The translations under genes were made by a program, and so were the position numbers. The notes beneath the pieces are model-generated. The model ran no database searches and was not told the origin of the DNA. It worked only from the letters and a program-made list of their open reading frames with translations. Shown here piece by piece: positions 9,330 through 40,400 of a stretch of DNA of 64,000 nt (within the stretch, counting starts at the first letter, position 1; every line of letters starts with the position of its first letter). The stretch comes from Trichoplax adhaerens. Its lineage: Eukaryota > Animalia > Placozoa. The stretch covers positions 9,580,209 to 9,644,208 of the forward strand of contig NW_002060943.1 of assembly GCF_000150275.1 (NCBI RefSeq). Direction: 5' to 3'.

Positions 9330-9790
9330 ATATATAGCACTGTATAGTACAGTATAACAACAGTCTAGACCTAACAAAAGGTACCATTTTCGGTAGACCT
9401 GTACTATAGTCCACTATACAGAACAGTACAGTACGTCAGCATTTGCAGGGGTTAAGGTGTACAGTACTGTACTGTACAGTGTATAGTTGTGACATTTATA
9501 CTGTAAGATCTCAGACGGACAGAAAGACTGCAAGACATAGAGGATATAATTTTCTTTTACTTCTACTATACAGTACAGTATAATGTACTGTACTTAGCAA
9601 CTTGACGAAAGTTATCAATTTGTAACCTTCTTTGCCATCGGCTATGATAGCAATTTACGATCTTAATCGAACACATTTTGATGTCTCGCTCATTCAAAGT
9701 TATAAGTTAACAGTACAGTTTTCAATCAGCTTCAATCCAAATTTACCCACAGTACTTTTACTCTACCGTTACCTTACTGTACTATACGGA
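9330..9790. repeat. Degenerate TACAG/CTGTA pentamer tract upstream of PDHB
   Basis: Clusters such as gtacagtactgtactgtacagtgta (~9459-9484) and tacagtacagta (~9569-9580). Confidence 0.8.
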
Positions 9791-10401
9791 CATACAGACG
9801 CCGAGAAGGACGCGGCCTCACTCTCTCTGACTGCAAGCCTTGCACGTGCTCTCCCGCATAGTTGTTGCTGACAGTCATTACGGTAAAGCGAAGTAGTATA
9901 AACTAGTAAAATTGAGTAGTAAATGGGAGTAGTTAAGGACTTCGATCTACTGTAGATAAAACTAGAGGTAAAGGAAAAATGGTTCAAATCATGGACCATT
10001 ATGTCTTCTTGCAATGGTCCATAGTTAAAGGCAGGCGAATTGAGATGGGAAATAACTGCGTAGATACAAGTAGTTACTTAGTTAGCGTGGACTGTGGTCT
10101 ACTGTACAAAAATTAATAACTTGGCACTGGTTAATATCTCTGTTTGTTGTTTCCCTTTACTACTATAATGTACAGTGTTCAGGGACACCTACCACAAGAA
10201 AGAAAGTGCTCCGTGTCCAATTAAACTATGGACAAATGTAGTAAATACTGCACTACTTGTATACAGTATAAGCATCAATTATACAATTATAGTTTATTGC
10301 ATTTCAGGATTTACGCTGAATATGATCCTATGAATAATGGTCGAACAGTTTATTATAATTTCATAATCATGAGATCTCTACCAGACAAAACATTTTAGAG
10401 T

Positions 10402-11586
10402 TTAAGAACGTGGTCTCTCTTTCTTTTCTTTGTATAAAGCAAGCAATGATACATTTGCGACTTTAACAATTTTAAATCTAACACCAGGAATATCACCAAC
10501 TGCATGTCCTTTACGGCCAAATCCAGCAACTAATACCTAAAGTATGAAGTAAAATAGCAGATGATCGTGGTAAATTTATCACGAAATTTGGACAGCGAAA
10601 GATTCAGAGGATTTTACTTTATATATGAGAAAACTACGTCATTTTACTCATGTTATTAATTCACAAATTCGGGTACCTCGTCATTTTCTTCAATATAGTT
10701 AAGGCATCCATCTCTTGGAACAAAGGCAGTTATTTTTTTACCGTTCTTAATCAGTTGTACACGAACACATTTTCTTATAGCAGAATTAGGCTGCTTGGCC
10801 TCAACACCCCTGGAGAAGACGTTTCATCAGTAAATGATGGGCATAACCTTAGCTGGAAATACGTGTAATGTATTGTACAAATGTAACATATCTAGTGAAC
10901 TTACACTTTTTCCAAAACAATGCCTTTTGCATGGGAAGCTCCACCAAAAGGGTTAGCTTTCAAAGCAGTTCCTAGATGGCGTTTCTTGTAATCCTTATCA
11001 TGCCAGCGCTGATCACGTCTATGTGAACGTAATTTGCGTGCAGTACGTAATCCGTGAGGTTTTCCTGCAAAAATTGACGGATCATGTAAAGGCGTGTTAG
11101 TTAATTTACTTTTAGAATCGCTACAAGTTTAGTATCACCAATGGCTCTTTTAGATATGTATAGACATATAATGCTGTACAGTGCCTCGCTGCTTTATTTT
11201 TGTCACTAATACGGACTGACACGATAATAAATTAAAGGTTTAAACTTCAGGACGAGCACTAATCTAATAGTACATAACCACAAATTACAGGAAATTATAT
11301 AGCATTTCTTATTATGTGTGCATATTCACAAACAGTCGTATCTATGCCATGCGTGAAACTTTTACAACTATTCCGCAATTCTTACGGTACGGTACTATAC
11401 AATATGGAATGTAGCTGTTTGAGTGGTTACTAAAGATTTTTTCTAACAGTTTTCTCGTCATTGCCCATCAAAGATCTAAGGATTCTAACATAGCCCGAGT
11501 GTACTTCACCGGGATTAGCTACGTGATAAAATTACATTCAGTCGAAAAATGTTGAAAGAGAAAGCTCAAATGTCGTACGTACCCAT
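10402..11586 (-). CDS. RPS23: 40S ribosomal protein S23 (uS12), 4 coding exons
   Basis: ATG G|gt at 11586-11583, then [140 protein letters not shown]. Confidence 0.99.
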
Positions 11587-11607
11587 TGACTCTAACCAAC
11601 TTCTGGA

Positions 11608-38500: not shown

Positions 38501-39833
38501 GATGCATTCCGTTGGAGTGTCTCTTTCGAGTTCACATTGATCTAACAAAAACTACAGAGTGAATTACTTGCAGCGTATTTACTGCTACCAATGCTACGGC
38601 AAAGGAAGAATCTGATGTTTATATATTAAGTTGTATACGCATTAATAAATGCATAACCGCATGTAGGGCATTTTTAAAAGCTGTTTGTACAGTAGCAGCC
38701 ACATAAGCTCGTAGTAGGACTGTTGAAAAAAATAATTAGACTGTGCAAGTATCATAATAATTATAATGCAAGCGAGGTTGATCACTCTCATTTGACTATA
38801 GCTCCCAGTGCACCTAGCTAAGTCATTTGTTGTATGGTGTACCATTAATTTGAGCATGATGGCGTATCTTCTATACAAAAGTATATTATAATATCACAAG
38901 TAGCTCCAACGTTCATCCGTTGGAGACAAATATTCATTATAATTAAATGGTATTTTAAACACTATAGATGGAGAATATTGTATAATAATTGTAGTGCGAT
39001 ACTGAATCAAAAGCTATAGTACTTGATACACATATTAAGATGTTAAGACCAAAAATTAACGAATAAGAGGTTACAGGGTTGCAGAAATAGTGAAAAGTAT
39101 TGCATCATCTACCACATCAATACAGCACTGCTAAGCACTACGGCATGGTCTGCTAACACTAAGTATTCGATGCCGGTACAGTAACGTGCGCTATAGTAAG
39201 TAGTGCAGTACCGAGTCAAGGGTATAGGCGTTTGTCAATTATAAATGACGTTTGTTAAAATCGGAAGGTCTCCAGGTTAAGAAAATAGTTGACAGGATAC
39301 CAGGATTACCAGTAATTTGCCACTAGAGTTCCTTAATTAAAGTAGACAAACAGAACTCACTTCACTAGTAGATAGCATAGTACAGTATACTCGTACTGCT
39401 ACTGAAAGGTTAACCATGAATGATAATCGATGACCTAGGCTGTTGGTATTTCTTCTGGAAGACCGTGACTATCCACTCCCCTTTACAGTACTGTAGTGTA
39501 CAATCCCACAACTGATACTGACTATACTGAGCAGATAAATAAAATATCATTTTCGAAAATGCTGTAATCTCTATTTCCTACGTTGATAACATAAACACTG
39601 ATATTACCAGCACATTGGTGTAAAGTGTAGGTCAGTGGAATGGGCATTTGTATCTGTGCAAAATGTTTTGCTTCAAAGAAAAACATACCGTACAAGGTAA
39701 GGTATTCAATGTTTTACGCTACCTCGTGTATTATAATAGCTAGTCGCGCTGCAATAGCTTTATTTTTTAACGTTTCTTCAGCCTTTAGTTTGCTTAGACC
39801 GACGCTTGTAAATAATTCAACGCTTGCTTCCAT
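32548..39833 (-). CDS. QARS: Glutaminyl-tRNA synthetase (multi-exon)
   Basis: [24 protein letters not shown]; NFHKPG|[15 protein letters not shown]; [25 protein letters not shown] (HIGH motif); LRYDDTNPE; [27 protein letters not shown]; [11 protein letters not shown]; [19 protein letters not shown]; [12 protein letters not shown]; [16 protein letters not shown]. Intron 1 is ~2.2 kb. Confidence 0.98.
37611..37990. repeat. Degenerate direct/inverted repeat insertion in QARS intron 1 (possible foldback/MITE relic)
   Basis: 24-bp direct repeat tcaattcaatgactaattcaaatc (37635-37658, 37752-37775). Inverted matches tgatttgaatt (~37867) and attgaattga (~37946). Central T-run plus G-run at ~37838-37855. 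Confidence 0.5.
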
Positions 39834-40019
39834 TTTACAAGTGCAGTAGGTCTTTCCGAGTTATAGTTGAGGTTGTGCTGACAACAGCAAATTCATTAAA
39901 TAACGTTGTCAGTAAGCCACCAGCAACTAGTGTCGTTTTATAAGAAGTTGTCGGTACTAGACAGTACATTGACAGTAGAGTTTCTATGGGCAGAGACGTA
40001 CCATACTGCGTCCCAAACT

Positions 40020-40400
40020 GGCTGTACTGTACAGTGTACAGTGTACAATACAATAACCTCCACAGTACTATGCACTGTAGTGCATCTGGAACAGTAAACT
40101 GTACAGTGTACAGTACTGTATACGAAAGGGTTTTGCGTTAGAGCTTCTTGATCACCATCGCTACTTCTAGTCGAGCTACTGCAAAATATGCAGCATTCAC
40201 AAATATTCTACAAAGTAACATGCAAAAATTCAATTTAATTTAGTCATACTCGGTACAAATAGACAGTATCAAATGTTGTATTGTCACTGCAGTACAGTAT
40301 AATTCACAAGGAAGGGCTCCACTAGTTCAATATTAATAAATTAATATATACTCGTATATATATATACTGTACTGTACAGTACTGCATAATAGAAGTACTT
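40020..40400. repeat. TACAG/CTGTA tract in the QARS/claret-like divergent promoter
   Basis: ctgtactgtacagtgtacagtgtac (40022-40046), ctgtacagtgtacagtactgta (~40099-40120), tactgtactgtacagtactg (~40365-40384). Confidence 0.85.

Follow-up and report, generated by a model that had tools for sequence, protein, structure and literature searches.

Arrays of the ACAGT microsatellite, best written (GTACW)n, lie upstream of genes in a gene-dense stretch of the Trichoplax adhaerens genome

INTRODUCTION

What are the dense pentamer arrays that fill the DNA upstream of genes in a 64-kb stretch of the Trichoplax adhaerens genome, and do they contribute to the promoters that they adjoin? The stretch, referred to here as the window, is G000:C1414:9580209-9644208 of an assembly of 105.6 Mb in 1414 contigs. 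An earlier note, made from the letters of the window, had described dense arrays of TACAG and CTGTA at five places, had stated that an ACAGT pentamer is an abundant simple repeat in Trichoplax, and had proposed that the arrays form a lineage-specific promoter code that marks every promoter. We find that these arrays belong to a known repeat of Trichoplax adhaerens, the ACAGT microsatellite, which was described earlier as promoter proximal. The additions of this analysis are the description of the repeat as (GTACW)n, where W is A or T, the observation that fold-back is inherent in this unit, and the presence of runs at two orthologous promoters in other placozoan-like sequence. Our preferred reading, held with moderate confidence, is that the arrays act as an upstream promoter or open-chromatin element.

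Much of this had a precedent. Pentanucleotides make up 61.8% of Trichoplax microsatellites, and ACAGT makes up 78% of the pentanucleotides (Wang et al. 2010, Biol Direct 5:18, PMC2871265). In the same study, ACAGT repeats were found upstream of genes, 54% within 1 kb and 85% within 5 kb; the associated genes were enriched for ribosomal proteins and kinases, and from this gene association the repeat was proposed to be a transcription factor binding site (PMC2871265). The idea behind the promoter code is therefore not new. More recently, Chimaera, a convolutional network trained on Trichoplax Micro-C maps, recovered the "repeating motifs ACGG and ACAGT" (2026; PMC12817080). This is the same pentamer, independently recovered as a feature that alters predicted contact maps; the attribution is in silico only, and the text of that paper leaves the contact pattern unspecified and proposes no mechanism or factor. 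Together, these two papers mean that the observation and the core of its interpretation were already published. Mutator inverted repeats, in turn, carry a loop-anchor motif in the promoters of broadly expressed placozoan genes (Kim et al. 2025, PMC12221973), and two recent papers on placozoan gene regulation do not name the ACAGT repeat in their text.

RESULTS

Dense arrays lie in 5′ intergenic DNA of the window

Tandem Repeats Finder (TRF) placed period-5 and period-10 arrays at 9333-9477, 11697-11878, 15162-15475, 26820-27610, and 40028-40384, and the arrays were also read directly from the sequence. The 14-mer GTACWGTACWGTAC matched the window 33 times, always within one of the five arrays, compared to 0 matches in 100 dinucleotide-preserving shuffles of the window. 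Perfect two-unit 10-mers of (ACAGT)n or (ACTGT)n on either strand numbered 176, compared to a chance number that we estimate at less than 1. The great majority (170) were found in the 5.8 kb of 5′ intergenic DNA, a density of 29/kb, whereas the 4.9 kb of convergent 3′ intergenic DNA held a single one (0.2/kb) and the 53 kb of gene bodies held five (0.09/kb). The places given in the earlier note, upstream of gene starts, and its statement that convergent 3′ junctions carry isolated copies only are both borne out by these counts. An additional convergent junction that the note had missed, at ~30100-32600 between the LAP2-like and QARS genes, is likewise array-free except for one 10-mer at 31497. 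The claim of "five places only" holds for the dense arrays but not for weaker pentamer clusters, which also occur in introns, in gene bodies, or near gene ends at 24754-25041, 25330-25700, 29052-29580, 31389-32047, and 39310-39566. Each of these spans ~120 to 530 bp and contains 12 to 31 family pentamers with a few perfect 10-mers. Candidates for their identity are regulatory elements of introns, alternative starts, and arrays in decay.

The five dense arrays, to none of which a strand is assigned, differ in their makeup. First, the array upstream of PDHB (9330-9790), between the 3′ end of RPS23 and the 5′ end of PDHB, is a degenerate (GTACW)n array with GTACWGTACWGTAC at 9459-9477. Second, the (GTACW)n array upstream of RPS23 (11697-12070) was identified by reading the sequence and by its GTACWGTACWGTAC matches. 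Third, the densest array (15160-15600) lies between the divergent starts of SAR1 (minus strand) and PSMD6 (plus strand). It holds a 113-bp higher-order duplication, and at 15162-15195 there is a (GTACC)n run, equivalent to (ACGGT)n on the other strand, which is a rare CpG-containing variant of the 5-bp GTAC lattice. Fourth, between PXK (minus) and the LAP2-like gene (plus), at 26620-27615, (GTACW)n runs are interleaved with five copies of a ~130-bp cassette. Finally, sparser runs of (GTACW)n and TGTACAG lie at 40020-40400 between QARS (minus) and an RCC1-like gene (plus).

The five cassette copies are in tandem at 26870-27610, each bounded by GTACW runs. Matches to the 111-bp cassette core in the whole assembly were limited to its own locus, which means that the cassette arose by local duplication, and its candidacy as a dispersed element was rejected.

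These local duplications bear on the main rival explanation, that the arrays are a mutational by-product of open promoter DNA. A slippage-prone pentamer would arise and expand preferentially in nucleosome-free, transcription-associated promoter DNA, or be purged elsewhere, and would thus mark promoters without contributing to them. We regard this as possible but doubtful. The tandem duplications of 113 bp and ~130 bp agree with it, since they show that the regions are mutationally dynamic, whereas the lack of arrays in convergent intergenic DNA, which is equally non-coding, argues against it.

The arrays are the published ACAGT microsatellite

The contig coordinates of the window are the scaffold_1 coordinates of PMC2871265, as indicated by a DEAD-box match at 1025450 just downstream of the DDX6 entries at 1020711-1022931. 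Ten rows of Additional file 5 of that paper fall within three of the five arrays, at distances of 125 to 639 bp from the gene 5′ end. RPS23 has two of these entries (scaffold_1 9591947-65 and 9592042-57, at 125 and 218 bp, respectively), PSMD6 has four (350 to 518 bp), PXK has one (345 bp), and gene 52400, which is the LAP2-like gene, has three (264 to 639 bp) (PMC2871265). Perfect ACAGT/ACTGT repeats longer than 12 bp were found in four of the five arrays. The PDHB array reaches a perfect repeat of 14 bp only, and it is missing from the 2010 table because its perfect runs are shorter than 15 bp. RNA contig ends, gene strands, and the published distances all place the arrays within ~1 kb upstream of gene 5′ ends. 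The ACAGT microsatellite and the window arrays are the same element. However, PMC2871265 counts only perfect single-strand repeats of more than 12 bp and gives no null model. A description of (GTACW)n with mixed spacers is absent from it, as are a comparison of array positions with mapped transcript ends and any other placozoan.

The repeat is a GTAC lattice with A or T spacers

In the window, 81 consecutive GTAC pairs are spaced exactly 5 bp apart, compared to 1 or 2 such pairs for seven other palindromic tetramers. The spacer base between the GTAC copies is A in 36 cases and T in 39, compared to C in 4 and G in 2. Genome-wide, there are 2688 (GTACW)4GTAC sites, and the reversed controls gave 0 matches. 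All-A or all-T spacers account for 735 of the 2688 (27%, compared to 12.5% expected for random W), and the remaining 73% mix A and T. The arrays are therefore best written (GTACW)n, with mixed spacers as the rule, which means that counts of perfect ACAGT repeats underestimate the element. It also means that GTAC, a palindrome, is common to the two apparent strands of the repeat and only the spacer base sets them apart, so that the array has no intrinsic orientation. For the by-product explanation, these figures point both ways. Pure-spacer runs are found at twice the expectation, as slippage predicts, but in the 73% of 24-bp runs with mixed spacers GTAC and its 5-bp spacing are kept, which is not expected of simple unit slippage.

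The same structure accounts for the strand switching through palindromes that had been noted in the window, together with the suggestion that the arrays could fold back. Inverted-repeat pairs of 31 to 91 nt and 76 to 94% complementarity are indeed numerous within the arrays. They would fit a model in which hairpins or cruciforms, extruded by arrays whose orientation switches, serve as a signal. However, any (GTACW)n is 80% self-complementary in register, with a mismatch at every fifth base, and this level is exceeded only over short stretches, for example, 31 nt at 94%. Fold-back thus follows trivially from a unit made of the palindrome GTAC and an A or T spacer and adds nothing beyond the repeat itself, and a structural signal of this kind appears very improbable.

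Short runs of a variant, (GTACS)n or (ACGGT)n, in which S is G or C, were seen at 11383-11396, 12662-12675, 15162-15195, 51619, and 59457. Runs of (GTACC)n/(ACGGT)n adjoin two arrays, one at the SAR1/PSMD6 array and another within RPS23 intron 1. They may represent the "repeating ACGG" motif of PMC12817080, which is tied in the literature to Mutator repeats and insulation. On the genome scale the variant is rare: the (ACGGT)4 20-mer has 11 copies, compared to 1454 for (ACAGT)4, a difference of ~130-fold. An origin of the ACAGT arrays through CpG decay of (ACGGT)n is neither supported nor excluded by these two counts and was dropped.

The variant also raises the question of whether the arrays are transposon derived, that is, remnants or relatives of the Mutator terminal inverted repeats found at placozoan housekeeping promoters and loop anchors. 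Like the ACAGT arrays, the Mutator loop-anchor motif is a repeat-derived sequence that is specific to placozoans, shared by several of their species, and concentrated in promoters of genes with broad expression (PMC12221973). A repeating ACGG motif from the Mutator element is named beside ACAGT (PMC12817080), and the (GTACC)n/(ACGGT)n runs that abut the SAR1/PSMD6 array and lie in RPS23 intron 1 offer a lead only. Compared by description, however, the two motifs differ, in that the Mutator motif is part of a transposon terminal inverted repeat (PMC12221973) and is of the ACGG type and not ACAGT (PMC12817080). In addition to the scarcity of (ACGGT)4, neither element-like internal sequence nor paired ends were seen, and the cassette, the one complex repeat found within an array, has no second locus. 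We consider a transposon origin improbable.

Arrays stop short of the core promoter at three placed starts

Spliced genes were searched exon by exon, and Pfam scans were made on single exons. These scans identified PDHB on the minus strand (Transketolase_C), PSMD6 on the plus strand (RPN7 and PCI), PXK on the minus strand (C-terminal WH2), QARS on the minus strand (tRNA-synt_1c), and the RCC1-like gene on the plus strand (RCC1). The LAP2-like exon carries a precomputed Thymopoietin domain, and RPS23 was identified from reading its exon. Along with the RNA contigs, this evidence leaves the gene identities and strands of the earlier note unchanged. Base-composition skew and splice-signal counts were tried as an annotation-free guide to gene strand and were not predictive in the window. 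The RNA evidence consists of assembled contigs and not raw reads, and the starts are therefore approximate; array regions also attract RNA contigs from other loci.

The clearest case is the SAR1/PSMD6 pair. The full intron-exon structure of SAR1 (minus strand) was given by RNA contigs of four studies, with a poly(A) site at 13124. Its 5′ exon (14870-15097, minus strand) was seen in RNA contigs of three studies, spliced at 14729/14870, and ends at or beyond 15097. One contig reaches 15097, ~65 bp from the array, and then continues into Illumina adapter. On the other side, the first exon of PSMD6 (15628-15926, plus strand; ATG at 15792) is covered by RNA contigs that begin at 15628 in one run and at 15673 in another, and an initiator-like TCAGTC word lies at 15630-15635. 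With starts at ~15097 and ~15628, the array fills the 530 bp between the two divergent starts and lies outside both mature transcripts.

At RPS23, the core promoter (11585-11655, minus strand) contains a TATA-like TATATAGC followed, ~25 bp on, by a polypyrimidine start, CTTCTCTCTC, with box and start at ~11653-11625. The published gene model begins at ~11623, and the array begins at 11697. Thus, at the three starts that could be placed (SAR1, PSMD6, and RPS23), the array edge is ~50 to 70 bp upstream of the start and the core promoter is left free. That the edges stop at this distance counts against a mutational by-product.

Some further features of these regions were observed. The polypyrimidine start of RPS23 resembles the TCT/TOP (terminal oligopyrimidine) initiators of ribosomal-protein genes in other animals, and RPS23 exon 1 codes for the start codon and one base only, followed by a GTACGT donor. 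In a single bin, 15086-15257, the RNA-contig depth was ~18,000 and ~31,000 in two runs, compared to tens to hundreds elsewhere; an abundant RNA of another locus shares repeat words with this bin.

Arrays mark a subset of genes across the genome

A re-count of the published table (186 rows and 100 genes over 3.5 Mb of scaffold_1; PMC2871265) showed that the nearest repeat is less than 1 kb from the annotated 5′ end in 52 of the 100 genes, compared to ~10% under a Poisson null from gene density (binomial P of ~3e-25, the null being our own approximation). Placement independent of gene structure, the property of a neutral microsatellite, was thus found neither here nor in the window, where densities fall from 29/kb in 5′ intergenic DNA to 0.2/kb at convergent junctions and 0.09/kb in gene bodies. 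The earlier note was right that the placement is non-random. It was not right that every promoter is marked: the 100 genes listed with a repeat are ~26% of the genes expected in 3.5 Mb.

A second sample consisted of 30 Ras-family loci with 1.5-kb flanks, in which an array was defined as at least three perfect 10-mers. These loci had 89 perfect 10-mers upstream, compared to 9 downstream, and an array was found upstream of 7 of the 30 and downstream of 2. In 21 of the 30, neither 1.5-kb flank contained any perfect 10-mer. This test undercounts arrays, since the Rab11 arrays in the published table lie beyond 1.5-kb flanks. The genes with close arrays are, anecdotally, of housekeeping types, for instance, RPS25, RPL17, TOM40, TFIIA-gamma, DDX6, and Rab11, and all three of the G protein-coupled receptor (GPCR) genes that fall in the table ranges read have no listed repeat. 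"Every promoter" is a property of this gene-dense, housekeeping-rich window and not of the genome. Only some genes carry arrays, about one in four when perfect repeats are scored as in the published table, and most of the examples that we saw are genes with broad expression. That most promoters work without arrays fits a mutational by-product.

A side observation concerns intronless genes with a single open frame, among which are many Ras-family genes and at least 147 class A GPCR genes. They are often clustered in tandem, with examples at 1.31-1.50 Mb and 3.26-3.37 Mb of contig C1407 and at 7.64-7.99 Mb of contig C1411.

Runs recur at two orthologous promoters

The comparison with other placozoans that the earlier note had proposed was made on placozoan-like sequence by exon-level protein searches, which found contigs of 33 to 34% G+C. 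LAP2-like exon 1 matched two contigs, L031 (from an ENA metagenome assembly) and L032 (from a Logan run), at 57 to 60% identity to the window. The second exon of PSMD6 (16292-16564, the RPN7 exon) matched L035 and L033 at 81 to 83% identity, L035 being at 81%. L031 (1-6672), in which the LAP2-like exon is 57% identical, keeps the convergent LAP2-like/QARS order of the window. In this 6.7-kb contig, the 5′ exon is closely preceded by three of the four GTACNGTAC words, all within the first 95 bp, and in L032 (2.3 kb), both GTACNGTAC words lie in the first 30 bp, with none further on. A similar placement was found in L035 (2.8 kb), where four of the five GTACNGTAC words lie in the first 95 bp, 110 to 215 bp upstream of the PSMD6 ATG. 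The contigs end within repeats, as short-word assemblies do. Runs of GTACNGTAC are thus present at two orthologous promoters, those of the LAP2-like gene and PSMD6, and this suggests recurrence, as an observation of two promoters with no statistic attached.

Other contigs were less useful. A third orthologous promoter was sought through RPS23 exon 2, whose protein is too conserved for this purpose, and the two contigs obtained (47% G+C, no PDHB synteny) were not placozoan. They contain no GTACNGTAC and serve as weak negative controls only. The L033/L034 contig begins inside PSMD6 exon 1 and is uninformative on the promoter.

The comparison bears on the by-product explanation in two ways. Between species, the flanking exons are conserved and the arrays change in both length and sequence, as would be expected of a by-product, but runs are nevertheless found at the same promoters in contigs with exons that are only 57 to 83% identical.

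Near the LAP2-like exon 1, a word like an E2F site, TTTCCCGC(C/G) or GTTCCCGCC, was noticed at 27667-27675 of the window, at ~361-369 of L031, and at ~70-79 of L032. In the window, the donor of this non-coding exon closely follows the word, whereas in L031 and L032 the donor comes first and the word closely follows it, and the word persists among the three despite diverged surroundings.

DISCUSSION

Of the explanations considered, we think it somewhat probable that the arrays, as the known ACAGT microsatellite in the form of a (GTACW)n lattice, act as an upstream promoter or open-chromatin element. We observe the sequence, the placement relative to transcripts, the genome-wide bias, and the recurrence in other placozoan-like contigs; the effect on transcription or chromatin is what we infer, from position alone. 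At the three placed starts, the arrays occupy the region from about -50/-70 to -500 and leave the core promoter free, and in divergent gene pairs they fill the space between the two starts. Most likely, and as the simplest model, a factor that recognizes GTAC would bind the array at many sites, first on one face of the helix and then on the other. A 5-bp period does not match the phase of nucleosomal bending, and this may add to the effect. We prefer this reading for three reasons. First, GTAC and its 5-bp spacing are kept while the spacer varies. Second, the arrays stop short of the core promoter. Third, they recur across lineages and are absent from the convergent spacers, which are equally non-coding. 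A link to chromatin, predicted in silico by the ACAGT motif of the network trained on Trichoplax Micro-C maps (PMC12817080), was also counted in favor of this reading.

An element of this kind would have parallels among simple-sequence tracts that lie just upstream of starts. GA-repeat (GAGA) tracts in Drosophila and poly(dA:dT) tracts in yeast hold promoters open, whether by means of a dedicated binding protein or by an intrinsic property of the DNA. Their sequence and period differ from those of (GTACW)n. Closer in period are the [(G/C)3NN]n repeats, which Wang and Griffith reportedly found in 1996 to exclude nucleosomes in vitro. They share the 5-bp half-turn period, which has no consistent rotational setting on the nucleosome, but their composition differs from that of (GTACW)n. 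An intrinsic resistance of the arrays to nucleosome wrapping, arising from the half-turn period, is therefore possible by analogy.

Several points weigh against a role in promoter function. The argument for function proceeds from position, and a microsatellite can build up in open promoter DNA and yet serve no purpose there. Most genes have no arrays, and the asymmetry at Ras-family loci, counted per locus (7 compared to 2), is not significant on its own. The arrays cannot be aligned between species, so that it is presence and position that recur and not sequence, and the cross-species sample consists of two promoters on contigs that end in repeats. At 40% G+C, compared to 34% for the window, the arrays are also unlike excluders of the poly(dA:dT) type.

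A more ambitious version of the preferred reading can be stated tentatively, and we hold it to be rather unlikely as a whole. In this version, (GTACW)n would be a phylum-wide, orientation-free element upstream in the promoters of placozoan housekeeping genes. A dedicated GTAC-binding protein would coat both faces of the helix and set both the nucleosome-free region and the insulation or hub behavior seen in Micro-C, and the rare (GTACS)n would be the loop-anchor form. If true, a microsatellite would here have taken on a function analogous to that of CpG islands or GAGA tracts.

That the association exists is not news, since it was published in 2010 and a model found it anew in 2026. What the (GTACW)n description and the edge at -50/-70 provide is a sharper target for tests of mechanism. 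Placozoans are reported to regulate their genes almost entirely from proximal promoters, and a simple repeat that flags about a quarter of promoters would make a piece of the promoter grammar of an early-branching animal unusually easy to read.

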